64,000 nucleotides of DNA from Takakia lepidozioides (Eukaryota; Plantae; Bryophyta), in assembly GCA_030704615.1 (NCBI GenBank), contig CM060732.1:5084001-5148000 (forward strand), written 5' to 3'. How positions within the stretch are numbered: position 1 is the first letter of the stretch; each line of letters opens with the position of its first letter. The notes under the pieces were generated by a model that ran no database searches, had not been told where the DNA came from, and worked only from the letters and a program-made list of their open reading frames with translations. Below are positions 13,131-61,700 of this stretch, piece after piece. The translations under genes and the position numbers were made by a program.

Positions 13131-16100
13131 CATGCCTCTCTCTTATATCAATTTGAATGAACAACTCTGCAGGAGAAGATGCAAAGTGTGGCGGATGGGA
13201 TCCCTTCGGGGCAGGGGAAGGAGATCATTGTTGATGTGGACGATGAGTTCTATGAAAGCAAAGCTGCTGAGATGTTGGGGGGTCAGAAGGTAAACTCTCA
13301 GCTTGTGGTGCAAAGTATGCTTGCCCCGGGTGGGAGGTTGAAGATTCCCCTGTGTATGTTCGTTTCCATGCCCGTCGTTCGTCCACCCCTCATTAAGGAC
13401 ATCCTGAAGCTGGAGGCCGAGTTTGTTCATGGGTATTTGGATGGATCCGCAGTCTCTTACGTTTCTACAAAGGATTCCAGAGGCAATGAGCTCCTTGTGG
13501 ATGAGTCAATCGTGGACTCCTGGGATCCCATTTGGAGACAGGTGAACGAATCCTTCGAACTTCTTCTCTCCAAGAAACCTTCCACCCAGGCATTCTCAGG
13601 GAAGATGTTTCACGTTTGGGATGGCAACCACCGGTTGCTTGCATGGATGGCTGTCATTGGGAGGCTGCACTCACAGGAGAAAGAGTGGCATTACTCTGTT
13701 CGATCGATGGTGCTGGATTGTGACGGGAACATGATAGGTCTTCTGACGGCAATGAATGATGTGAACAGTTTGGTTTCTCATTCTGCATGTTCCACTTGTG
13801 GTTCCGTGGTTCTTTGGTTCCAGTCCTCTGTTGACGGTCCTTGAATTTCATTCTAACTTTCACACATCATTCTACAGAGGGACGGAGACATCGCATGTCA
13901 AAACGAGTGTGGTTCACACACTGTACAGGATACAAAGGATCGGGCAGATGCCCTTGACCAACTTCAAGACCATCCTTTCAGCAGAGACATACAAGAAGTG
14001 CGAAAGCTCCAAGACATCAGAAACGTGGTACTCGTCGACCCGTGAGGCTTTCATGGAGTATATGTACGTGGTGAGATACATCTTCCATCATCTGGCCTTT
14101 CGATATTTCTGCTTCCACATGTTTGTTTTTGTTTGTTTCCCTTGCCCTTGGGTTGATGCAACTCTCGTGCATTCCCTTGCAGCAAGACATTGCAGATGCA
14201 GGAGAGCGTGGCAAACTGGAATACTACAGCTCTACCCCTGAGGAGAGAAGGACAACAAAGGGTGTTGAGAGTCACATCCAGAAAGAGATGACCGCCACAA
14301 GAAGGACTATTATGAGTGCTTTTGTGAAACAACTGAGAATTGCAAACCCAACCTTCGGACCAGAGTTCCTTCAAGAGGTGAAAAACCATTACAACAAGCC
14401 AGGCAAGCCGGAGATGGCCCAGGAGAAGTTACACAGGTTGTCTACTGCCGTTGTGTCTTCAGAACAGAAGGTGAAGTGGCTACAGATATGGAACTCCGAT
14501 CCCACTGTTAGGGATACCCACATGTTCCCCAGGCCGGAGAAAGAGAAGAAGACCCAGCGTGTCATACCTGTCAGTGACAATGTGCTGGACACATGGCTTC
14601 ACAAGGCCACTTACTGGAGCCAGGTATGATGTCCTTTGCTGTGTCACTTTCTTTTCGCTTTTTCTGTCATTCTTTTTCCATGTTACATTTTTCCATACAC
14701 TTTTTCTATGTGATTGTTTTTGTGTTCATTCTTGCTTCTGTATTGGTCTGCACTTGGAGGAAAGGGCCCGGTCGGTTCTACATACGCAGCTAGCTGACTA
14801 TGGGATCACCATGACAGAACCGAAGGTCTCCTTCCAAGCATACATGAGGAAATGGAGTGCCACAGTGTGGCAATCTTGTTTCTTCAGAGAGTTCAGCAAG
14901 GATGCTGGCATCAATCGAACAAATGAGCTTGACCAGCAAGAGAAAGGAGAGGAAGCCTAGAAACGATGCCTTTACAGGTGCAAAATGGACTATGCTTCTT
15001 TGTTTTGTATAGACACAATCTCCTCCATCCAACGTCTTTTTGGCTGGCTCATATGAGTTTGTGGTGGAGTGTAATGTGTCGCATACTCTTTTAGGGGGTC
15101 TTCGTGATGGGGTGGAAAAGCTGGGAGACAATATTTGCATTGCATAATGAGGTTGTCTCTGTTCCTGCAGGTACATAAAGTATGTTCTCATGGCAGAGAA
15201 CTGCTTGGACAAACATCCTGATTTCGTGGACCTTTGGCTTGTCCCTGCTGGCAACCAGACCATGTTTACTACGGGGATCTTGCATGACTGGGGCCCAGAC
15301 CATCTTTCTGCTTGTGGTTGGTATTTGGATTACCCTGCTTCAGAGACCCCAGCTCAGGAGGTTTCTTTGAGGAGAGAGAATGAGCGTATAGTAGCTACCA
15401 CCGCAGCAGCCGACCTCGACATTCATGAGAGAAATTTGAGGACTCTTGCAGAGAATGAGCCTCCCGCTCAGGATACACCGGGTAAAGGTAGAAAGGCAAA
15501 GGGAAAGGATGTTGCTAGTGGTGTGGGGAAAGGAAGGGGTAGGGGGAAGGGGGCACAAGGGCAGGTAGGTGGGCAGGGAAGTGTTGTAGATATTGGCCCT
15601 CTGGTGGTTGTCCAGCAGACTCCACCGCATGGTAGGGGATCCGGGAGAAAGAACAAGGGGGTGGTTGATCCCAAGGACCCGTACCATGCAGTGGAGTATC
15701 CCACGAGGGTCATTCACCCTACCAGGTTGGAGATGGCCAACGTCGGGTTCCTTGCCATGATGGAGTCCAAGAAATTTGATTACAAAGGCGAACCATCACC
15801 AGTGTGGGAGAGGATTGTGGAGTTCCTCGGCACGGTGCATGTTGTCTTTTGCTTCTTGTCTGTTGTGTGCATGGATTGTTTCAATCCTCTTGAGCATTCC
15901 ATTACATGCTTGTTTGCAGGCTAAAATGACCAAATCTTGGGTGAACGGGAAGGAGAAGCCATATGCAGCCGAACTCATCATCTTGGACATCCCTGATGGG
16001 TTACCAGTCCCGGATGTCCCTCCATCGGGTGCTTGTCCAGGTTGGAATGCTTTTGATGAGCGCTACTGGCGGTGGATTTTCTCCTTTTACAATTTCTTTC

Positions 16101-17875
16101 TATCCGATGCAGGTGTTTTGGTGCTCATCCAGTCCATCGACCTTCGCTGTCGCCGTGCACTTGCCAGCTATTTGAAAGCCTCCGGTATGAGGGTCGTGAA
16201 GACATGGAATTGTGTGAACAGCATGTACCTGACAAAGGGGGATCGTCCCAGAGAGATGGTAAATCTGCCTTCTTATTCCTCTTCTTGGTGGTTCTCGGAT
16301 GGAGTTGCATAAGTCGCTCAAATGAATATGTAGGGGCCTGGTTTTCAAGCTTCTTAGTTCCTTGTGTATGTCCTGTTCGCAGACTTGTTTGTTTGAAGTT
16401 GTTTGTCTCGTCCGAGTGCATCCACCTACGACTCCAGCCGTCATTAGGGAGTTCGCCATCACTCATGGGGGCAAGTTCATAGACGAGAGGACAGATCCTC
16501 CCACGGATGACATGCACCACAACTACGTGGACATCAACGTGTGCTTGCGAAGGGGGAATGGGGTTCCTTGGAGAGGGGCCAGGGAGAGGAGCCCGGTTTT
16601 CATTCAGACGATTGTGGAGTGCTGCACCTACACAGACGCCAAAGTTCTGGATTTGTCAATGGGCACAGGTTCGTCTCTTCAACATTCACATTTTGTGAGG
16701 TTTGTTTGACCTTGCACTTTCAGCTCTTCCCACCGTTCCAAATGTGTCTTCAATGTCTGTTTCCTTCATTGTATTCCACTGCAGGTGCCTCGTACCACGC
16801 TTGCAAGGCCAGTGCGCGACATCTCTTTGGGATTGAAGGGGATGCCGAGATTTACAAGAACCTCATAATGGGTTTGGGTGGACACACTTCTCAAGTCTTT
16901 CCGAAGCCCCTACCCGTTGATGTTGATACAGGGGAGACTTCCGACAAGGAGCAGGATGACGACTTTGCCTGTGAGCAAGTTCAACCTGTGGATGCTTGCA
17001 TTGTTGTTTCAATACCCAGAATCACTGTTCTTAAGGCAAAGTGCACATGGGAGATATCCTCTTCGTTGGACTTGTGCATTGCATCATTGAGTTCAAAATT
17101 GGTTTTTGTCCACTTGTGCAGGAGTCCGCGTGCTTCCACTGACCCTCCAGGGCTATCACACATTTTTGGACTTTTTTCAAGTCATCCTCAGTCTTACGTC
17201 CTACCTGTCTATGCGGAGGCACTCGCAGCAAGCATGTCCATTCATGGCACTCGCAGTCCAACCATCGACGGCCGTGGTAGAAGACGTGGTGTTGGGGCCG
17301 GAATCTTTGTGGATGACATAGTACAGGAGGTCGATACTGATTCTGATGACTGTAACACTTGATATGAAGTTTTCTTTTGCTTTCATTCGGGGCCAATTTT
17401 GAAATGGGATGGTTGTGTGTCCTCGTTGTCATGTTTGCAATGTGTGCGTGGGATGCAAATTCATAGGAACAAACTATCGTTGGAGATGGGGGTTGCATGG
17501 ACTGCGCGGGTTGTTCCTTCAATCTATTTAGTGTTTTGCGGAGCTCACAGGCTTGTGTGCATTGCAAAAACAAACAAACGTCTTTGGTTCGGGTAGAGCA
17601 TTCTCGCATCATTTGCTCGTTGGTCTCCAAACCATTCCTGCTAGAAGAATGCTTGGTAAATCCATCATGATAAAGTCCACATGATCAAAGAGCGTTTAGG
17701 CATTCTCAATTCTGGTGAGCATCCATGATGCTCCCGCACATACCTGGCATGTTTGCAATCCTGGGTCTAGGATGTGGCCCAGATTCTATGAACTCTGGTT
17801 TACTGGCTGTACAGTATTGATGTTGAAAGGTTTGATCTGGGGTACAATACCTTTCCTATTGACAAGAGAAAAAGT

Positions 17876-20800
17876 TCAAAAGAGAAGAGACAAGAGAAAA
17901 AGAGTGTGTCTGTATTGGAAAGTACCTGACTCAACATTCACCGGCTCTCTAGTTGAATTTGACACATCCTCAGGCTCTGATACTGCATTTGGTACCCACC
18001 TGCTTCCCTTACGAGTGCATTTTGCTCTCCATAGCTCACTATGTGCTGCAGCACTGGATCTTAGGGAAGCTTCACGTCTTGCGGCTATCGCTTCCTCGCC
18101 TCGCAATGTATCAAATTCTGATTCGTTTGTAAAGTTCTCTTTGTTTCTAAATCTGTGTGCGATTATCCTGTACCAGTGCTGAAACGTTTGAACTAGTGGA
18201 CTTTTCTTATTTTTGCCACCGGAGTGTTGTGTGTGCCTTTGATAGGCAGTCTTCGCAGCGTGATGCGAGTTCTCCATGCCCTGGCAGACCACACTGCAAG
18301 GCTTCCATATCAATCTACAAAGTACGGAGCATGTCGAACAAGCACATGCTGCCAAAGACACAAATTTTGTCAGTTGTGAGCTCACAAACAACCAAATCGA
18401 TTTCACCAAATTCAAACATAAATTGAAATGACGGGATCCAGAGTTCACTTGCCATGTAATGTGTAACATGATGCTCTCCAAAACATTTGATGTAGAGTCG
18501 GCCCCATTGTTCCACCTTCTCTTTGAAATCTGCAACCGATTGATCGACACCAAATCTGAGACCATTGAAATAGGGCCGCAGTCGATCCAAGGCATGCCAC
18601 TGCTCCAATCTCTCTCTTCGTACTGCTCCATTATTCATTCTGTTCTTTTCTGCATTCACGACATCCACATATAACTTCCGAGGCTCTATGGCAACAGGAT
18701 TGTCCTTGAAAAGCTTCAATGCATGGGCTCCACTAAAAGAGGGCTTGTTTGGGACATTGTTTGCCCTCCCAGACAAATCTTCATCCTTAAAATTTGAACA
18801 TTCCCTCCATGGGCACCCGTGAGTGACAACAACTTCTGCATCTCATCAACGGCCAATTTTTGGAGAGCTTTGTAACGAATTGTCCAAATATGAATGAAAT
18901 GCAAGTGAACAATCTTTTCAATCACTCGGTTGAAAGCATGTAGGGTGCATATGTGGACTCTGTCCAGTGGTATGGGCAAAATGGGCTTCCAACGTCCTGA
19001 AGTTGCAGCCCCTGTGAGTGGTTGCGCTGCCACTTTCCTTGAAAACAACCCTTCATTCCAAGTGTATTTGGTTCGTTTCTTTATGGTTGCTTGGGCTTGT
19101 GTAGTGGTGCCCACTACAGGCTTCGTGCGTTCTTGGTTGCAGTAGATGCAACTGTGTAAGCTATTTGCTCCAGCTCCCAAGTTGTACATCACTTTTATTG
19201 TCTTCATATCTGCCGCCATATGCCATTCCACCTGAAAGGATCCAATACCAGGGACATCCAGTGGCTGTCCTTGCTCCTGTGCTTGAATCAACGCAGGAAT
19301 GGTTTGCGAGAAGACCCAACTCAATGTTTCATAGGTTTCCCGCACCACTTGGAATGAAGCGATGGGCCAAATCTCCCTCTCTGACTAAACTGAGAAGAAT
19401 TGTTCACTGTTTGGCTCAATCGTAGTGTCCAAAGCCCGGTTCATCAGTGTTAGAGACACTCTCTCCATCTTTTGAGCGTGCACAATTTCAACTGCATCTT
19501 GATGACAAAAATAAGAGGGTGTCCCTGCAATTCTGAAACCAAACACAGCCAAATCCTCAATGCCCAGGTCCTCAATGCCCGGGTGTTTAATCAATCGATT
19601 CCTATCAGAAGCTTTACCCTACATCTCTTGCAACACTACAAAATTAAGGTGTTACCTGCGGGTGTGATGCCGTAGAGCTCGACCATTGTGCGCTGCACTT
19701 GTTCCACATCGACAAAGATGGAATTATTATGATTGAGCGCTATTCTGACAGGCTCTTTGCTCTTTGACTTGGCAGTGGCTGGAATCTCAAGGCTATTGTT
19801 GATGCAATAGTATTCGCCAACATACTCACGTAGCTTGAGATTCAACGTTTTCCGAAGCAATGACACCTTATGAGGATTTGGCAAGCAACCAATGTGAAGG
19901 CCCCGACCAGAAGCTTTGGCAGACATTTTGAACTTTTTATAGATGGCTCCATATCCATTGTGCGTTATACCTTGCCGATCACAAGTTTCTAGAATCTCAT
20001 TTGCTCCTACTTTCTCCCCAATCTTATCCAAGTAGTAGTTGGCCATATGCACACCAACTTTGCTCAACTTCGCTGATTCGCACATTGAATTAACTTCTGT
20101 CTGGGACAACATAGAGGCGAACACCTTCGCAGTCTGCACTTGTGTCTCTTTACTTCCACACAAGTGATTTCTCGTTCCCTGGGTTGCATTTGCACTTTGA
20201 ATTTCTCTCGCAATAGCTGGGGCAATGATAGCTCTTGCTAAACGCCTCAAATGTTTTGCATGACCGCCATTAGGCGCCAATTCAGCCACATCCTTCCTTG
20301 GTTTGATGACACCCCTGTACCCATAGGGTGTCCTCACCATTTTTTCCATCCTCAATTCCCGTCGCTTCAAGGTCGCCTTGGTTTTGCGTAGCTCAGAGCA
20401 AATCGAATCCAATTTTCTTTTGTGCTCTTCTTTGAGCGATTCTATCTCTATCCAAAATTCTATCTCCATTTGATCGCGCTCATCGGAGCTCAGTACATCA
20501 GCGAGCGGCCTAAACACTCCTCGTAAGATGCCTTCATGCTGTGATATTGCTCTTTCAGAGCTGATACCTCCGCTTTCAACGATTCAGTTGCTAACATAAT
20601 CTGACCATTTTCTTCCTCTACTCTTTGTCTACGAGACGTTTCTGTGTTGTTGAATTGTAAGGGTATCTCTCTATCCTCAGCTGAATCTGGCAAACTCTTG
20701 ACCAGCTCACGCAACAACGATATCTCTTTCTGAGCCTCAACGAAATTCAATTCAATTCTTGTATGATTTGCGGCAAGATTTTCAGAGTAACCCAGTAGGC

Positions 20801-21053
20801 CGCTCTTGCCATCCCTAGTAAATTCCAGAAACTCGCTCACTGTCCGAAATTGTGGACGTTTGCCGTCGACGGGGCTGTGTGGATACAAAGATCCATCCAC
20901 CCACAAATCAATATTACTCGCCCCTGCTTCTCGTCTATGAGAGAATTCTGATTTCGGAGTTTGCTCATGAAGCATGCGATTCCTTAGTACCAATGGTGCA
21001 TATTTCCCAGCTATGGTTGCTGATAATTTGTAGCTTCCCCTCTCATTAGCCAT
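17876..21053 (-). pseudogene. RAG1/Transib-like DDE transposase, intron-containing, with frameshifts and stops
   Basis: RAG1-core-like motifs occur in order: GITHNGYGAIYKKF..LPNPHKV; FCHQDAVE (D, 19496-19498); SEREIWPIASFQVVRETYETL; AADMKTIKVMYNLGAGANSLHSCIYC (D, 19208-19210; CxxC); ICTLHAFNRV; THYM|HVLVRHAPYFVD*YGSLAVWS; QGMENSHH (E, 18272-18274). Confidence 0.75.
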
Positions 21054-22189
21054 CTTTGAACACAGTCTGACAGGCTTGTTGCTACGCACAAAACATCACT
21101 GAAATGATCACGGATTTGAACTTAGATTTGGAAGTTGCAAGGAGTGCGACTCTCTAGGCTATAGATCAGTTGTTGTTCCTCATGTACAATGTTTTAGAAC
21201 GACGAGCTATGATCCTTCCACTTTCAGTACCAAAGTGGATGTGATATGTGCTGTCACTGTGGCTAGAGTACTTTGAGGCATTATTTTTTAATCAATTCTT
21301 GAGTTGTAGATATGACTGCACCGAGAAAATTTGTACATACATACATTACATTAGTGTCCAACTCTTGAACCAACAGGAAATCAATTGGCTGCAAGTACTA
21401 ACAATTGGCTGACCTCCACGTTGTATTTGTAGGGTGTGGAAGCTCCTGGACAGCTGCTGTTACTGGTATAGACACCTTATTGCTGCAGTGTTCTGGCAGT
21501 GAAGAAATGAGCACAGAAAAGCCACAGGGACTTTCAGGGAGGATTTGGGGGGGCTTGCGATAGGGGTGGTTATGACTTGAATTTTTTAGTTTGGGGCCTT
21601 TCTTTCAGTTGTTGGGTGACATTTCCTGCGAAAGGAGGTCACAAACGTCAGCACAGTAAACTTTTTCACACGAAGCTGCAAATTCATTGAAACACAGATA
21701 CCTGGCAAGTGAAATAGTTTGGGTGACTGGACTATCACAAAATGTACGAGATTGCCACCCCTAGAGAGTGTGTGCTCTGTCAGCATTTTTTGGCATGTTC
21801 AGTGGGACAGTTCCTCCGTCCACAAACAAAGGAGAAGAGAGATTTACACATACCTTTAAACCTTGAGTCACGGAGCTCTGGTGGTGCGAGCAGCAGCCCC
21901 ACGTAGATGCTTCTCTGCCAGTGCTGCCCTCCTCTTATCTTCATTGAGCCATGGCTACACCCCACATTCATCTCTCAAACCCCCATCCCTCTCTCTCTCC
22001 CTCTCATGGGCTGCCATTTCCGCACCAGTCACACCGGAATAGGGCGCTAGCTGAGAGGTCTGATTAGAAAAATCTGTCTTTAATTTTCTTTAAAAATACC
22101 TCCTGATTTGTGAAGATGTCGCATGATCATCCAACCAAAATCAAGGGAGCAATGGAAATGAGCAACTCGAGGGCTCAAGGTCTGGGGAA

Positions 22190-22503
22190 AACTATGCCCA
22201 GCTGCACCACATCTACTACTTCAAAAGTTCACCTTCTGAACAAAGGCCACATCCTAGTTAAACAAGCAGTCCATATAAGCAGCATAACCACTGAATGCTA
22301 CCACTCTTCCATACTCCATTCAAAGTGGGATCTCCACTCTCCTCTCCCACAGTCCGTTCCCACTTCACTGGAACCAATTCAGCACTTGGAATACCACCAT
22401 TCATATCAAAGGCAATCAACTGCTGCAACGGGAGAAGTTGCGGTCTCACCCACCTGGTTATGAGTTTCTGAGGCTTTTGACCCCATTTTTCTTCTGGTGC
22501 CAA
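22190..22503 (-). pseudogene. Possible degenerate FCP1/NIF-like phosphatase fragment
   Basis: QQLIAFDMNG resembles the LLILDLNG motif at ~60660, and an FEVV-like stretch lies downstream in another frame. Heavily decayed. Confidence 0.25.
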
Positions 22504-24746
22504 GTCAACAACTTCTGAGCCACAAGTGCAGATGGGTTGACAATGTTAGCCTATAGTCCGACTCTCTTAATGAATTACAGTAGAAAGAAAAAAAAAATTG
22601 AAATACTTAGAATCAGATTGTTACATGTCCAATCTGTCATCATGTTAATCATGTTAAATTTTGAATAATGTTTTATTATTTTAAATAATAAATATGTGTT
22701 GATTTAATTCGTACAGTAATATAACTTTTAATGATTCTAATAAGTTTAGGTTATGACTAAAAAGATGAATACTAAAAATAACTAAAAAATGATTAAAATA
22801 TAAAGATAAACTATCAAACCTTTTATTGCTATATACAACTCGTTCTTCCACTTAAGTCTAGACTCAAGTGGTCTGGCATCCTTCTATCTTTGATGATTTA
22901 CTCAGTCTATATTTTGTATAGTGAAGTATTTGTACAACACATGTTTGAGCACCAGGGACTCGCATTTGGACTGTTGCTATTTCCCCGGCAAAGAACATAC
23001 ATATAACCAGTAAAGTCAACCCCAGGGGTTTGTGAAGGAAGCAAGCATGTATTTCTACAAATCCACCCTTAGCCTTGGGATCTTCGTCCAAAGCACATGA
23101 TACAGGGGGCCAGATTGGATGCAGACGATCCATCGCAACATCTATTGTAAGAGGCACACAAACAGCTTTGCTCTGGCCTTCACTGCATAACTTCAATCCC
23201 ACCCCCTGCAGGGAGGAGCTGTCCCAGTCTCCAGTACAGCTGCCATCTGTTTGGCCTGATCTTCGAAGTGGCCAGTAAACTCAACTGCTCCAAACACAGG
23301 ATATAGATCAAACGGACATAAGAGTAAACAGCTCAGGTGCAGGTAGCAAGAGACAGGGAGAGTCCTTCTCAACCTATCATTAGATAGACAGTGAAGGCGA
23401 AGATTCGTCCACTCTTTGCAAAGAAAATACAGCAGCACACAAAGCGAAGTGACCAAATCTAGGAACTGCGTCCAGGCTCTAACACCCAGAGTAAACCACC
23501 ATACTGAACACAGCATACTGTCTAAAGGAAACAGAACGGCAGGGAAACTGCGTACATCTATCTTGTATCCTTTTGGTACAATAGAACTAAGTCTCTGTCT
23601 ACAAACACTACGTTGAATGTATTCAGTTCCATCATCAGCCAAAAATAGCTCCAAAAAACAGGTACAGGAACCCATGCCAAAACCAGCATCACCATCTTCG
23701 CAACCATGTATACTTACATTGGACCTGTCTTAATAGATACACAAACTACCTATTGGGGAAACACCCTACGCTATGTGAGGAAATGAGTTATCACATGGTA
23801 CTTCCAAACTCCCTTGAAAATTTCACCATAAGACTTACCCATTCTGATAACACTTACAACTCCAACAGTGAAAGAAATAATTTAGCCAACCACCATTCTA
23901 TGATACTGTCCGACAGAACACTGTAACTCTTTATTGAGACGAGAAGTTTGCAGAAGGTATAGACAATCTTCTTGTCACATTTTCACAGGTAGCCTCCTTG
24001 CCTTGCTCATTAGCTGCATGGTTTTTTGTGCTCTAAATCCGTTTGAGAAATAGCAATAGAACACCATGCCTAGGTACAGCAAATTGCCCTATATTGTACT
24101 GCCCCTTGCTGGCGCAGAACTGATCAAAGACATCTGAATTACTCGGTACCGTTGGAGCTTCAAGCTTTTCCCCTGTTTCATTTCAGTCACAACAACGCAA
24201 TCCTCAGTAGGGGGGTTTTCGATTCATAGGACTTTCCATACATTTCACAGTGAACTCAACCAGCATGCTTCAGATCATTATCAGAAATTAAGAATAAAGG
24301 TTCGCATTGTAGGCATATGACCCATACTTTACAGAAATGTAATAAAGAAAAAAGCAAAGTCCTAGGAGTAAGATCACACCCTTGTCAAAGATCGACTAGG
24401 GATTTCCGACAAACATCCTCAGTGCTCGACTGTCCTAATGATTGCCCCACCTGAGCCTGTTACATTTAATTTGTTGATAGAAAACCTGTCATGCAAATTT
24501 CAACAGTTCTTTGTTCTTAAGAGAAGACACACATTACCTGGCAGAGATTGGGAGACAGAAAATGGTGTACACTGTGGAGCCAAAAGCATTGCTGCAACAG
24601 CTGCCAGCATAGAGGGTAGACAAGCTAAAGGCCTGTACAAGTTACAATGTTCCTTCCTTCAAATATATACCTCCCTGAGGCTGTTAAACATCAAAATAGT
24701 CAGATGATCTGCCTTGCCCCAACCATGGTCTTCAGATCGGTGCATT

Positions 24747-29806: not shown

Positions 29807-31992
29807 CACTAGAAGAGAAACCTGCTTTTTCCACGGTTTTTTCCACACTTTTTGCTGTGGAATCAGCCGCAGTCCACACCTGCTGTGGGTGTAAGAAACG
29901 ACTAGTGCTTTCGGACACCCCGTGGACGGCCTGGCTCTCGGGTGGCCCTGTGGAAAAGTCCACATGTGGCTTTTTCCATGGGTGGCTTTTTTCACGGGGT
30001 GCATGGTGACATGGCCGCTGACATGGCCGATGGCATAGCTGACATGGCAGAGTGTGAAAAAGACCAGTGTGGCATGTTTCACGGTGGATTTCACACCTTG
30101 AACAAACCACTATGCGACACGTGTCATATTTCACACCTTCGACAAGTCACTATGCAACACGTGTTCGTTCCTGTGTGGTGGTACGCATTAATTAATTATT
30201 AATTGATTTCCAATATTAAGTTTGAATATTAATGGATTTAATTTATTGCTATTATTATGATGATGATTCTTATTATTATAGGAAAAATGGACAGTGGCCT
30301 TGATGAGAACATTATTAAATAACAAAATATTGAAATTATATTTTTAGAAATTATATTCGCTCAGATACCAAAACACACCCTTTGCAGGGAAGGAGAGTTT
30401 GCCTTAGTGTCTATGCTGAGTTGCGTCTCCTACTCTCTGTAATCTATTAGACATTCACCTTTTTCCCTCGGTTGTCCCACCCTTGACTGGGGTCAGAAAA
30501 GCATTCATTCCACAGCTTCTCCTCATCTCTGTTACATGTTTATGGATACTTTCATATTGTCACTTTGGCAGTATCATGTCAAAATCACTCCAAACTATGT
30601 ACCATCCACCCATGCAGGTTTCTTGTAGCTATCATTCCACAAGGAATCATAAGTAATCTGGAGCTTGAAATCTGGCCCTCTTGGATGACACTCTATCCCT
30701 GCTCCTTCAGCTATCCATGTCTCTGCAAAGATCATGCATACATCCTTGCATTGCTGTTAGCAGCTGACAATGGCAGCCTAGATTTGTTCCAGCAAACACC
30801 CAACTCAACTTATCACACCAGTTCTTATTCTCAATTGCACCTACTACTCTGTAATCCAAAGGCATTTACCTTCCAAGACGGTTGTCCCACCATTGACTGG
30901 GGTCAAAAAAGTATTCATTCCACAGCTTCTCCTCTTTGTTACATATTTCTGGATACTTTCCTATTGTCACTTTGGCAGTATCATGTCAAAGTCACTCCAA
31001 ACTATCAAAAGGTTCACTCAACCAGCTAACTTGCAGAATTCTTAAAACATGAAAATTTAGGGCGATTCTGATAAGAGGGGAAAACAGAGTGAAATGTGTT
31101 GAAGAAGGTGCCTTGATTAGCATTGCCTGATTTTATCAATTGTGCCGCTGCTACTGCAGCTTCCAGTTGACCATCTACCCATGCAGGTTTCTTGGAGCTA
31201 TTTTTCCACAGGGAATCACCCCTTCCCGCATCATTGCTCATAGGTCTCCAAGGCCTCCATCCGCGCCCTTGCTGTGCATCTCCTGCAATCATCGCACTCC
31301 ACGATACCACATCTCGTTCAGTCATACTGTCGAACACTTCATTTGCATCCTCGATGCACCCACATTTGGCATACATGCAGTCCACCAGGGCAGTGTTCAG
31401 AATGACATTGGGTACAATTCCAGATTTGACGATGTCACCATGGACCTCTTTGCCCTTTTCGAGAGCTCCCACGCTTGCACATGCATTACAAACAAATGTG
31501 ATGTGGTTGGGCTTCACCCCTTCGCTCAGCTGTTGCTCATAGGTCTCCAAAGCATTCCTACCACACCCAGGTTAAATCATGCCAACATTATATTCAACGT
31601 GATCAAAGTTCGTTGAGGCATTCCATTGAACACTCGGTGTGCATTCATGATGCTCCTGCACTTAATATACATGTTCACAAGGGTGTTGAGGAGAAAAACA
31701 CTTGGCGTGAATCCACTTCCTCAAACTCCCCATACACCACAATGTGGAAATTCTATGGTCCCATTTCACACATGTGTGTAACATGCCATGTAAACTAAGC
31801 CAATTCCCGCCACGCTCATGGCTGTTTTCACACCGTTCTTGCCTCGGGTGTGAATCATATGTGAGACACCCCACAGTTAGGGCATATTTTGACCCACACC
31901 TTGGCTCACTCTACAGACCCGTGATAAAAGCCGTGGAATGTGCCAGGTGTGAGATGGCAGAGCCATGGAAAAAGCCGGTTTCTCTTCTAGTG
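29807..31992. mobile_element. Pack-CACTA element carrying PPR and PDF-motif gene fragments
   Basis: 30-bp TIR CACTAGAAGAGAAACCTGCTTTTTCCACGG (28/30 match at 31963-31992) with 3-bp TSD TTG (29804-29806 / 31993-31995). No transposase inside. Confidence 0.93.
30430..31730 (-). pseudogene. Captured fragments of a PLS-type PPR gene and OSB-type PDF motifs
   Basis: PPR repeats GVKPNHITFVC..NTALVDCMYAKCGCIEDANEVFDSMTERDVVSWSAMIAG. PDF motif pieces DPSQWWDNR and HPRGPDFKLQITYDSLW. Confidence 0.85.
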
Positions 31993-46509: not shown

Positions 46510-47531
46510 TTATGATGACAAAAGATGGACATTTGAGAAACAGATGGAAGAGAGAATCGTTGCAGCACTTACAATGCAGTCACGAGAGCCACCATGGCTC
46601 TCAGCATTGCAAACACACACAAACGTTATGAGGTTGGGCTTCACCCCTTTCCCCATCATTTGCTCATAGGTCTCTAAAGCCTCCATCCCGCGCCCCTGCT
46701 CTGCATACCCTGCAAGCATCGCACTCCACTTGAAAACTTGAGATAGTACCTGGATGGCTGACTCCTCCTTGACACGTTTATGAAGCTCGACATACTGGTA
46801 GTCGATTGTTTCCAGCAGCCATTGCAGATTGTTATGCAGCTCTTCATCAATTGTGTCATCACCCTAGACAAATCAAATACCAAATCAAATACCTCTACTA
46901 ATATGTTTTTATTCTCAATTGTACAGTGGCAGAGTTACACGCCAACAATTCTTGTCAGTCCACACTAAAGCCTAGTAAGTTTCACCTTGAGAATTTTGTG
47001 CTGCAACAAATGGATGATTATTATGAGTGCTGAACCCACCTTAAGGCTTGCTGTTGTGGCACCTGCCTTGCAATCAATCCATCCCCCACCATCACACCTG
47101 AGTGAATGCTTATATCACTGAAAGTTGCACATAGTTGGAAGCCTGCAAAGGCTATGATGATGGGACCATAGATACTGGTCAAATGGAGGATTGTTGTGGA
47201 ACAAAGAGATATAGTCAAACTGCAATACCAGTTGTGTGTGCAGATTGACTGCAAGATTCCACCCCATAATTCAGACCCAGGGATAGTCATAGCTGTTGGC
47301 ATTTCCTCTTCACTATTCCCAAACTAGCAAGAAGTGGCTCCAGTGAATTATAATTCAAACAGAACATCTCTTTTGCAAAATGGCCACTGTGGTGCACCAT
47401 ATCCTCACCATTGTATCCAACATTCTAGTTTTCTCTCCTAGCATAACATTTAGCAACCTACTCTTAATGTCCCTTTGCATCCTTGTTACACCCACATTTG
47501 GCATACATGTCCACCGGGGCAGTATTCATAA
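46510..47531 (-). pseudogene. PPR gene fragments (host of the retroelement insertion)
   Basis: MLAGYAEQGRGMEALETYEQMMGKGVKPNLITFVCVCNA (46510-46719) and NTAPVDMYAKCG (~47490-47527). Confidence 0.75.
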
Positions 47532-57011: not shown

Positions 57012-58400
57012 CTAATCTTCATCATCCTTATCTATGTCTGGCTCACTACATGTATCACTGTCTTCATCACAGACTTCATCTTCTCCAAGGGTTGGCTGAA
57101 CATCATCACCACGTATACGGGGTGCTCGGAGGTACAAGGAGGCCACCTGCTCTGGAGTAACCGGTACCGCTCGGCTGCATGTTGGGCCATCAGTAACCAC
57201 ACTCTCCTCTAGTCTTTGTGGGGCTAACAATCCTTCCACTTCCGCCACATCATCATTATCAATTGATATGTCGCAGACCACTCTACGTGCTCGAGGGCTC
57301 TTCTCCAGGACGACTTTCCACCCCGGCTCCTTCACACAATCAGAAAAAAACACTTGATCAACCTGGCCAGGAAACACAAAAGGTTGCTCAGAAGGTGGAA
57401 GCATACGGTTAAAATTGACAAGTGTGAAGCCAGCATCATCCTGCTTCATTGACATAGATTGACGACCCACACGACTCGCCCGTACCCACGAACACAAAAA
57501 CACTATAGGTTGTGTTTGGCCATAGTCAATTTGCAAAATCTCCCTTATAAGACCCACATATCTTGTAGGTTCCTCCATGTCATTGCCTGAATTGTTGGTA
57601 ATGGGCTGGTGCTGGAAAACAGATGAGACTCCACAATCAAAAGACACCATACTTGTTGTGTTCATGCCGGGGGATGTAACCCTGTAATGGTTACCATACG
57701 TTGTTATACTCTTGAATGACAGGGCAGTAAATAATGGAGGCCTTGAAAGATCCAGTAATTCCTCACGTGTTGTAGGATCAAGCCCATCTGATTGAATTGA
57801 GAGATGATCCCGTACACCTTGAGGGAGCCAAACAGCAAATGGAGGACAAGGATGCAAATTAGGAGGGTACTGAATTGCCGTGGGATTGCTCATGCCTTCC
57901 AGCCCTTGCTCCTCACGAAACAAGCGTCGTCTGGCTTCTATCCGTGTGGACTCTGCTTCATATATCCTGTCACAATCCGAGGGTCAGCCAGGAGATCAAC
58001 AGAGGTGGCGTGGGAGATTTGAAAAGACGCCATATGCCAACTAATGATAAATGACTAAAACTTGGAAATATGAATGTCAATGAAGTAGATTTCTTACCCC
58101 AACATGACTGATAGACGAGGATGGTTCTGAATGATGTACTCATGTACAATATCACACAGGTCATTCAATTTTCGGGCTTTAGAACTTCCTTCCACAACTT
58201 CACGTTCCACAGATTCTGCCTCATCTGCATCCCACACCTGTATCTGCACCTGCATCCACTGCAAGCACTCATATGGTCTGCTGGTCATCAACCCAGCCTC
58301 ACCATAAGGATACCAATTTGAAGAAGCATTGGGTTTTTGCACAGAGTATATGGCAGGATTTGATGGAAGTGTACGAAGGGAGTTCAAATTCTTTGCCCCA
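57012..58400 (-). pseudogene. CACTA TnpD-type transposase C-terminal part (DUF4216-like), 5'-truncated
   Basis: VHEYIIQNHP; YGNHYRV...DCGV...YVGLIREILQIDY...VFLCSWV...DDAGFTLVNF...EQPFVFPGQVDQVFF....PGWKVV. Confidence 0.88.
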
Positions 58401-58772
58401 TGAAACCAACGTCCTGGTACTAAGCTACAATGGCTACTTATAGAGATACTTGGGTTACTTATGCACCCAGAATATCAGTAAAACTTGGAGGGATACTTCT
58501 CATGGACCCATCAGGTTTGTCCATTTGAATTCTTGCTATGGATTTCAGGAACACCCCATACCTAAGAGGGCTCAAAAATGTACTGGGAGGACATCATTGG
58601 GGCCAATCAAATTTGGGAGATTTACTGCCCAAGATCATACTGAGTTTTGGGTAATCTTGTCCTTACAAATGATATGTGCTTCCAGTTTGTTTTGCCTGAA
58701 TTCAAGGATTTGCTGCTTGCTGCCTATATGTATGTGTAATCACCCACATTGTACTGGGGGAATTTCTTTTCA

Positions 58773-61700
58773 GGGCAAGCACAAGCGCACTGGATCCACG
58801 ATCCCTGCTGCTAGCAATGGAGATGGCGCCCACAAGAATGCAGGAGGTGGCCCTAACTCTCCCAACGTTATGGGTTCTGTGCCACCAGTACCCCCACCTT
58901 ATTATGGTATGCCTCAGTACCCACAGTCTGGCACTCAGTATGGTCAGGGTCAATATGGTGCTCCTCCATATGGGCAGTATGGGCAGTATCCTCCTCCACC
59001 ATATTTGCCACCCCCTAATAGCTATGGGGGTGGCAGGCCACCGGAATATCCTCCTGCTTATGGACAGTATGGCCAGTATGGTCCTCGGCCTTCGGGCCAA
59101 CAACCATGGCCACCAGTCCCTACTTGGCAGGATCCTGCTTTGAATTCTCCTGAGCGCACGGAGGTCTCTGAAGGAGGGGAGGGTGCCGTTTCAAAGAATG
59201 ATAGAACCAATGCTTTAAGGAGGGCTAATAGCTCAGCCAAAATTGAAGCTGCCAAGGTCAAGGAAGAGAGAATAGCTACAGGTCTTCCTCCCACGGTGAT
59301 TTTGACGAACCTCAAAGGAGCCCCGTATGGTCAGACCCGGAATGTATGGCACGCTGCCCTTAAAGGACAGGCTTATCGCAAGCTAGATTGTTCCCTTGCC
59401 ATCAACAACCAACCTGATGAAGTTGTATACGAAATCAGAGATCACCTGGCTAAGCTATTTTCATATACGCCGCACGAGTTAAAAGACTTCCACCTAAAAC
59501 AAACAATTGGCAGAATAATGAAGAGCCAGCGTTATGAAGCACACACTGCGTGGTTGGGTGGTAAGGGGAAACCCATTACTGTATCTGACGAGGTTTGGAA
59601 CAAGCTTGTAAGTTACTGGCAGACAGAGGTGTTCCACAAAGTGTCGGGCAACATGAAGAAGGCAAATGGTGCAATTCTGAATCCTACCAAGACTGGCCGT
59701 GGTGGGGAGGCAATGGTGGAAGCACGCTTGGTAAGTGGCATCATCACGACTCTGTATTTTGTTCCTCATTGAATTGCTATGTGTATATAGTCAGCCCTCA
59801 CATTGCTTACTGACTTGTGGCATGGGTTTGTTTGTGGCATGGATTAATTTGTAGGAAACACTATCAGGGTGCCCTCCTACATTATATGAAATTCAAGAGG
59901 GTTCAGTGTCACGGTTGTCAGCTGGGAGTGACAGGCGGGTAAGTGTGTTTTCCACGTTTGCTAGAGTGGTTGCTGCATCATAGGTTGCTAGGGTTTTTTT
60001 CATGGCTTTTGGCCTGGGTTTTCTTTCCAATGGTTGTTCATGCTAGGTTTTTTTGGTTTGATTCATACTTGGGCAAGTTTTCATGGATTGGCAGGAGGGA
60101 AGTCTCGCATATTCTACAGTAGTTGGCAGGATGGATGGCTTGGACAAACAGGTGGAATCACAAGGACGTGACATGGCAGAATTAAAATTACAGATGCAGA
60201 GTATGATTGAGTACCAGAAAGCCATTGTGACCAAATTGGGGATTAATCTACCAGGCGCAGGACCAGTGACATCTACGATGGATATGTCTGCTGTGACAGT
60301 ATCAAAATGTTTGGAATCCCAATTTCAGACGGTAACTGGTGCTCACTCTAAGCCCTTATGTCTTCCTGTCACTGATGATCTTTTGAATTTGACCGAGCAG
60401 CAGCAGGATACAGGGAAGGCCAGCTGTGAGGTACACGTGGAAATTCAGCCCTTGCCACGTACAAAGGCAGTAACAGTCCAGGGGGCAATGGTGACAGAGC
60501 CGCCGGGCACACCGGATTCTGGTATGCAGGTATGTGGGAGTTTAGATGGGGAGGAAGATGCAGACGGGGACAAAACAAACAAGCAGGTTGCTTTAATTTC
60601 TCCTGCTCACATGTTGAAGCCAAATGTCAGTTTACTTCCTGGACCAACGAGGAAGCATTTACTAATTCTGGACTTAAATGGTCTGTTATGTGAATCTTTT
60701 CATTCTGCTAATGGGCCTGCATCCCTTCCCAAAGGTTTTGTGGGGAAGATGTGTGGCAAGAAGATGGTAGTTTTGAGACCACGCTGTTATGACTTTTTGC
60801 AAAAGTGTTTTAAACACTTTGAGGTGGCGGTGTGGTCTTGTTGCCAAGCTCGCAACTTCTTCCCAATGGTGGACTATATTTTTGCAGCCCACACTAACCT
60901 GGTTTTCCAGTGGGATGCCCTTCACTGTGACGAGGATCCAGTCCTCCCATGCCATAAGGGGTCTGATTCAAAGCCATTATATTTCAAGAACTTGTCTACA
61001 GTGTGGGCAGACTGGCCAGAATGGACTTATGAGGACACTGTTCTTGTTGACGACACACCAAGAAAGGCGGCAAACAATCCTCCCTTCAGTGGGATTTTTC
61101 CAGAGCCATGGAAGGTGCAACCAGATTCACCAACTGATGAGTATCTAACAGAGGTGTTGTGGCCTTTCTTGTGGAAGGCATCGAAAGCTGCCAGTATTCC
61201 CAAGTTTTTGGAGTCTCAACCTGTTTTCGGACAACAACCATACAACACTGCTACTGTGAAGGTACAAACATTCTGACAGTGCTCCAGAGGCTACATTTTT
61301 GTGGATTCATTCATTGCATTGCTTTCCTGGATGCTTCTCCTCGGTTGTTTGATTAATGCTAGGTTTTCTTTGCAGCTTTTTATGTTGGCTTTTTTTGTTT
61401 GATTCATACTTGGATTTTGTTTCTATTCACTATTCATGTTTGCTCATTGCTTTCCTGGTTGATCTCTGGTCTGTGACACAGGAACTTGTGACAAACAAAG
61501 GTGATATTGTCGACAAGCCGGTACAGACGAGGGGCAAGAGTGTCGACCCGGCGAGTAGCCCCCAAAAGAGGTCTCACCACCACTGGAGACTGCAAATGGA
61601 GTAAGTCCAGGCCATTGTCTTGTCTGTTATATTTTTTCCAACCTTGGGGCTCTCTTTAACTCGCAAATGTTGAGTGTCCTAGTCGTGTGTATGTCATGGG

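Follow-up and report, generated by a model that had tools for sequence, protein, structure and literature searches.

The moss Takakia lepidozioides carries a decayed transposase gene with a RAG1-type catalytic core in a 64,000-nucleotide stretch of its genome (assembly GCA_030704615.1, contig CM060732.1, forward-strand positions 5,084,001 to 5,148,000; hereafter the window, to which all coordinates refer). The gene lies in pieces on the minus strand, from 21053 to 17876, and its motifs follow the order D, D, CxxC, HxC, HxxxxH, E. Our results support that it encodes a DDE transposase with the core fold of RAG1 and Transib and a C2H2 zinc-ligand pattern. The copy is a dead pseudogene that cannot make protein. 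We read it, with modest confidence, as the flank-truncated transposase gene of a cut-and-paste DNA transposon from the CACTA-Mirage-Chapaev-Transib (CMCT) clade, most likely in or next to Lanisha rather than in Transib proper. The gene is real, but it is probably not of a new kind, its hallmarks being common to a wider group of known transposons.

To place the fold, structure models were made on two natural relatives, P0106, which is a complete protein, and P0021, the exon product of the window's own subfamily. The P0106 model, built with an 88-sequence alignment, had a predicted local distance difference test score (pLDDT) of 82.5 and a predicted template modelling score of 0.78; the first catalytic Asp (D1) sits on the first long strand and the second (D2) after the fourth, an arrangement that an RNase H fold would predict. 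A Foldseek comparison had been proposed by an earlier note, which was made from the letters of the window alone; run on the models of these relatives, it ranked RAG1 top, with P0106 giving RAG1 at E 7.5e-12, HzTransib at 2.9e-8 and BbRAGL at 9.1e-8, then Hermes at 6e-4. VIA-align superposed residues 18–517 of the P0106 model onto RAG1 479–1008 (Z 22.4, root-mean-square deviation 3.5 Å, 409 residues), with HzTransib (Z 21.2) and BbRAGL (20.4) close behind, then the P element transposase (12.9) and Hermes and ISCth4 (9.4). For the P0021 model (pLDDT 84.2), RAG1 and RAGL chains were the sole matches above noise, and HzTransib was absent among its matches. In the ESM Atlas, the nearest shapes were unnamed clusters commonest in Rotifera and Mucoromycota (template modelling score 0.67–0.69), with RAG1 at 0.60–0.62. 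We conclude that the family as a whole conserves a DDE core of the RNase H fold, into which helical and zinc modules of the RAG1 type are inserted.

The link to RAG1 can also be seen at the level of sequence. When 177,635 PDB sequences were searched with phmmer, the relatives P0069 and P0090, which are continuous through the C-terminal part, gave 15 matches each, all of them RAG1 (E 0.0024–0.019). Their HxxxxH and Glu align ungapped to H937, H942 and E962 (RAG1 928–965), and the comparison of this block with RAG1 in the earlier note is thus beyond chance. The RAG1 family PF12940 was likewise the sole Pfam match for these two proteins (E 0.003, below the gathering score, profile positions 553–593). 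They were the only ones among the queries tried to reach RAG1 in PDB sequences: neither the window pieces nor the family profiles A1 and A2 retrieved it there, HzTransib had no sequence-level match in the PDB searches, and exon 4 of L001, a more intact copy of the gene, had no Pfam match by itself. An ESM feature search with P0021 put RAG1 clusters on top (0.96), and its ten best named matches were all RAG1. In Pfam, five window pieces had no match, RING and N-terminal RAG1 domains included, and no family rose above threshold for members of the transposase family. The CACTA families Transposase_21 (PF02992) and DUF4218 (PF13960) were found neither in the window pieces nor in 90 family members at E <= 1.

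To our knowledge, the solved structures within the clade are those of RAG1, RAGL and Transib only, with none for CACTA-Mirage-Chapaev (CMC) or Lanisha. RAG1 is therefore the first match to be expected for a CMC or Lanisha enzyme as well, and, with no non-Transib lineage among the solved structures, the RAG1 match indicates kinship at the level of the clade, not membership of Transib. Transib is defined by heptamer-like CAC terminal repeats and a 5-bp target duplication. We consider it unlikely that the window gene is a genuine member of this superfamily, either sister to the group from which RAG1 arose or part of it, and that it represents an intron-bearing Transib branch of plants and algae. 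Such a placement would agree with RAG1 as the sole sequence-level match in PDB and Pfam, with D2–CxxC and HxxxxH–Glu spacings equal to those of RAG1 within one residue, with the whole-core match to RAG1 and HzTransib (Z 21–22) and with the lack of any matched CACTA family. A RAG1-like core with DDE and CxxC/HxxxxH is indeed present, as in Transib, but this is necessary and insufficient, since C2C and H(3-4)H motifs between D2 and the Glu are common to the whole CMCT clade, Lanisha included (PMC12730594). These clade-wide motifs are present in the window codons and conserved in the family, and because they are not specific to Transib, membership of that superfamily is unproven. Moreover, HzTransib is unmatched by sequence and missing from the matches of the P0021 model, the unnamed rotifer and Mucoromycota clusters are structurally nearer than RAG1, no CMC or Lanisha structure exists for comparison, and searches for CAC-type terminal repeats, a 5-bp duplication and a partner gene were negative. 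The description of the gene as RAG1/Transib-like in the earlier note is therefore supported for the core fold (Z 20–22) and unproven for membership of Transib.

Placement in or next to Lanisha is favoured by published descriptions. The moss Ceratodon purpureus yielded Lanisha, which was presented as a new superfamily of cut-and-paste elements (PMC8245031; GenBank MT647524; Repbase Reports 2020, 20:2521). The published CMCT tree puts it beside Chapaev with weak support, apart from Transib and RAG1, and contains a Lanisha family coded RhIr, a code that the source does not expand and that we read as Rhizophagus irregularis, a fungus of the Mucoromycota. The presence of this family in the tree, together with the Rotifera and Mucoromycota clusters being closer in structure than RAG1, speaks for Lanisha, and by published description the identity of the window family with Lanisha is probable. 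Several points weigh against this placement. It draws on published descriptions and is circumstantial; RAG1 as the sole outside sequence similarity, with no CACTA Pfam family, would also fit a lineage nearer to Transib and RAG1; and no termini or target duplication were found, so that no terminal character backs any lineage. The existence of Lanisha also bears on the statement in the earlier note that such elements are not typical of land plants: because Lanisha was described from a moss (PMC8245031), this premise is weaker than assumed. A 2022 paper lists 39 "Transib-like" proteins from plants, of which those visible in the part of the source at hand are from angiosperms (PMC9435367).

The gene was resolved into the following parts.

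20493–21053, minus strand: coding block 1, with the ATG at 21053–21051, a conserved FLEF..DG..GLLGY motif and then a coiled coil
20493, minus strand: stop that ends block 1, caused by a frameshift near 20500
19656–20517, minus strand: coding block 2, in another frame, ending ..ELYGITPA directly before intron 1
19533–19655, minus strand: intron 1, 123 nt, GT..AG, phase 1
19496–19532, minus strand: start of the catalytic core, ELQGHPLIFVIK, then a frame break, then the D1 codon GAT (19498–19496)
19387–19385, minus strand: premature stop TAG, where relatives carry Q in the motif FSVQSE
18719–19348, minus strand: longest intact core open reading frame (ORF), holding D2, CxxC and H-x-C-x2-H
19210–19208, minus strand: D2 (AADMK), codon verified in the window
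19150–19148 and 19141–19139, minus strand: CxxC, codons verified in the window
18955–18938, minus strand: H-x-C-x2-H motif, within the longest intact core ORF
18453–18793, minus strand: continuation of the core, FKDEDLSG ... GEHHVTHYM, in another frame after a frameshift in a T-run near 18790–18793
18349–18452, minus strand: intron 2, 104 nt, GC..AG, phase 0, immediately after THYM
18348–18346 and 18333–18331, minus strand: HxxxxH, the first residues after intron 2
18312–18310, minus strand: premature stop TGA, between HxxxxH and the catalytic Glu
18274–18272, minus strand: catalytic Glu (QGMENS), after a frameshift near 18285
17876–18271, minus strand: C-terminal tail with the stop codon at 17878–17876, aligning with P0069 residues 198–297 and L001 exon 4
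16900–17758, no strand assigned: very high-copy repeat, adjoining the gene 118 nt past the stop codon and outside the transposase unit

By tblastn, block 1 is homologous to the N-terminal ORFs of L001, L002 and P0186, and the homology of relatives to the window is confined to 21035–17936; block 2 aligns with P0008, P0034 and ORFs of L001 and L002. L001 lies on a 298-kb metagenome contig and has the same exon order, with the block HVLVKH..GSLSVWNCQGMEKS uninterrupted, which confirms the frame that the earlier note had inferred across the stop and frameshift of the window. The position of intron 1 is matched by an intron in P0008 and L001, and more than 20 family fragments run into an intron after THYM, where P0069, P0090 and the P0106 group are uninterrupted. 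The claim that the gene has introns thus stands for 19655–19533 and 18452–18349, whose positions are shared by relatives, whereas the other breaks are frameshifts or stops. As a separate observation, a transcript-like 3-kb contig (L004, positions 1–2966, JGI 3300017171) has the entire protein spread over three successive ORFs, each in a different frame, and lacks an intron after THYM.

All three motif strings quoted by the earlier note are present and colinear in the minus-strand translation at this place. Its comparison of AADMK and the following CxxC with RAG1 agrees with the verified codons, and the spacings (first and second Cys 20 and 23 residues after D2, Glu 20 residues after the second His) are kept in relatives. 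The first catalytic Asp was misplaced: the note had aligned a WPIAS..ETYETL segment with LADESD of RAG1, whereas D1 is encoded about 40 residues upstream (GAT, 19498–19496) and the segment forms the next strand-helix unit after the D1 strand. An upstream D1 is consistent with mouse RAG1, in which we take D600 to lie in CDGMGD, about 55 residues upstream of LADESDHETL. The statement that three acidic residues and the C2H2 ligands are present therefore holds for D2, the Glu and the zinc ligands, but not for where D1 had been placed.

In total, the gene has two introns, four frameshifts (near 20500, 19498, 18790 and 18285) and two premature stops, and it is because of these frameshifts and stops that we call the copy dead. 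We compared contigs from four public runs of the same organism with the window over 16900–22890, where they are about 99% identical to it. Run contigs cross 20397–20622 without a gap and one covers 18190–18654 without a gap; the frameshifts near 20500 and 18285 are therefore real and not assembly errors. At D1, run contigs differ from the window by two substitutions and by four additional letters after 19497 (19491–19497), reading ..IKLDEAEIVHA... Because they thus read an intact KLDEAE, the D1 lesion is private to the window sequence, and the difference reflects a polymorphism or else a paralogue of very recent origin. This 4-bp gap, absent from the organism's own runs, is what speaks for a gene that is intact or domesticated, with its breaks being assembly errors or unrecognised introns. 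We find that explanation scarcely credible: run contigs are gap-free at two of the frameshifts, both in-frame stops fall inside motifs conserved in relatives, and no RNA run contains the stretch. Differences between run contigs and window are mostly C>T and G>A, an excess that fits the expectation for methylated repeats. The transposase region is low in copy, at about 1–3 copy equivalents at >=80% likeness among the run contigs, and when public assemblies were queried for the exact window ORF, no record was returned.

To define the family, a word search with the 210-residue window ORF retrieved 32 unnamed proteins (37–68% identity), and an exhaustive search with their profile extended these to 508 proteins, 91 of them at E <= 1e-30. 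The majority of these are individual exons, predicted on eukaryotic contigs from metagenomes and run assemblies. Few members bear a name or label. One that does is a hypothetical protein from the fern Adiantum nelumboides, and two further word searches for full-length named relatives returned it as the only named one; short members of one 90%-identity cluster stem from protist transcriptome sets. Conservation was assessed in an alignment of 16 sequences (A1) and in one of 90 members (A3). D2 and the residues of CxxC and H-x-C-x2-H are invariant in A1. In A3, D2 is kept in 54/61 members, the two Cys in 55/65 and 54/66, and the H-x-C-x2-H residues in 65–68 of 68–71 (the middle His in 65/68). D1 lies in the motif LIFV(L/I)KLDEAE and is Asp in 34/37 members that cover it, and HxxxxH is found in P0069, P0090, L001 and the window. 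In the D2 column of A3, Asn replaces this second Asp in 6/61 members, which may, judging from this residue, form a catalytically dead and perhaps domesticated branch. A divergent intronless subgroup (P0106, P0111, P0126, P0154, P0204 and P0205) keeps D, D and E and has lost the CxxC and HxxxxH ligands, and it still matches the RAG1 fold at Z 22 in the P0106 model.

A family of this breadth might instead be an undescribed CMCT lineage of its own, neither Lanisha nor Transib, spread across plants, algae and other protists. Hundreds of relatives that no source names and that have no Pfam family, the fern protein together with fragments in protist transcriptome sets, and the intronless subgroup without zinc ligands are all in keeping with this. 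We nevertheless hold a separate lineage to be improbable, since Lanisha is already an unclassified, EnSpm-like moss family with C2C/H-H motifs, which makes one and the same family the simplest account, and since the missing names reflect databases without Repbase entries.

The flanks of the gene were searched for the ends of the element. CMCT elements mostly end in 5'-CA..TG-3' and have target duplications of 2–5 bp (Kojima 2025, PMC12730594). Around the window gene, neither terminal repeats nor a target duplication could be identified convincingly, and no CAC-initiated terminal repeat pair flanks it. The ends of this copy were probably lost, because unrelated repeats adjoin it at 17758 and near 22500. 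The summed depth of run contigs is 2,700–47,000 over the repeat at 16900–17758 vs 27–830 over 17900–22500 (about 100-fold), and loose contig ends pile up at 17758, a sharp repeat boundary. We considered whether this repeat resumes beyond the gene, which would mark an insertion, and rejected this because the loose-end sequence is absent from the window. Weak copies of the repeat occur at 31488–31664 and 46604–46678, and an ORF at 16541–17362, which the earlier note had put in a ParB-methyltransferase gene model, sits inside it. A second repeat with raised depth (22500–22890) begins about 1.4 kb upstream of the start codon. Comparison of 15000–23500 with the window itself yielded nothing beyond weak copies of the repeat at 17559–17742.

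A 24-nt inverted pair that encloses the gene (15803–15826 and 22328–22351, TGTGGG..CCCACA, 88%) was rejected as terminal repeats because it has no flanking target duplication and because the copy numbers of its two sides differ about 100-fold; it is probably due to chance. Around the more intact copies L001 and L002, searches for inverted repeats gave nothing convincing either, so that the CAC-initiated ends that the earlier note had proposed to look for were seen neither there nor at the window copy, where its 5-bp duplication was not seen either. Its statement that there is no RAG2-like gene or pair of terminal inverted repeats resembling recombination signals still holds after our searches of terminal repeats and neighbouring ORFs: no RAG2-like (kelch/PHD) gene was found, ORFs in 15776–17359 and 21248–22460 are without a Pfam domain, the 1.4 kb upstream of the gene contain no large ORF, and no partner gene is recognisable beside the window copy or beside L001.

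Elsewhere in the window, we sought a CACTA catalytic fragment for motif comparison and found only DUF4216 and a weak Transposase_24. These lie at 57015–57923 on the minus strand (DUF4216, E 2.8e-07, just above the gathering score) and at 58450–59769 on the plus strand (Transposase_24, E 9.5e-04, below it), and both are likely remnants of CACTA/EnSpm elements. An ORF with an NLI-interacting-factor-like phosphatase domain (60083–61273, plus strand, E 1.3e-16) is probably an exon of a host gene.

The conserved residues suggest how intact relatives would work. In their enzyme the RNase H fold carries D, D and E; a CxxC module comes after D2, and an HxxxxH module precedes the Glu by 20 residues. 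The three acidic residues would serve to cut the ends of the element. By analogy with RAG1 and HzTransib, a single structural zinc would be bound by the CxxC and HxxxxH residues; through these four ligands, as in RAG1, the inserted helical domain would be anchored to the catalytic fold. Intact members would, again as in RAG1 and HzTransib, bind element ends as dimers, nick them and probably form hairpins on the flanking DNA.

The window copy itself, dead and without ends, adds little. For the family, found in plant-type genomes, a fern and marine protists, modelling predicts with high confidence a complete RAG1 core that covers the pre-RNase H region, the RNase H fold, the zinc modules and the C-terminal helices. 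Accounts of where RAG1 came from usually lead through the Transib and RAGL elements of animals. The predicted core supports the published idea that the architecture of RAG1 belongs to a broad and old clade of transposons and not to animal Transib alone, and the family provides sequences with which a proper phylogeny of the CMCT clade becomes tractable. There is a smaller chance, which we regard as doubtful, that the family is a plant and algal branch of the Transib/RAG1 type, nearer to RAG1 than to any CMC or Lanisha lineage and with spliceosomal introns at conserved positions. If true, no resident elements of the Transib type would have been documented in land plants before these, and the RAG1 core architecture would be pushed back to early eukaryotes.

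Compared with known systems, the family shares with RAG1 and RAGL (mouse RAG1 4WWX and 6XNX; BbRAGL 6B40) the whole core fold (Z 20–22 over 409–435 residues), and with RAG1 a CxxC 20 residues after the second Asp and an HxxxxH and Glu that fall on H937, H942 and E962. It differs from RAG1 in sequence (about 13% identity), in having no RAG2-like neighbour, RING or N-terminal RAG1 domain, and in its spliceosomal introns, its different N-terminal region with a coiled coil and its plant-type host. HzTransib (6PQX, 6PQN) has the same core fold (Z 21.2 over 414 residues) and is likewise a single-gene DDE transposase without a RAG2 partner, but it has no sequence-level match to the family, and its CAC ends and 5-bp duplication were not found on the truncated window copy. 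ESTA, another CMCT lineage, has been linked to RAG1 by HHpred (PMC12730594). CACTA/EnSpm, Mirage and Chapaev resemble the family in their DDE core, where C(2)C and H(3-4)H lie between D2 and the Glu (PMC12730594), whereas none of the 90 family members (0/90) matches the CACTA Pfam families. With Lanisha, compared by description only, the family has in common a cut-and-paste enzyme, hosts other than seed plants, a lack of Pfam classification and the C(2)C and H(3-4)H motifs; the publication on Lanisha stresses similarity to EnSpm, whereas the sole detectable outside similarity of the window family is to RAG1.

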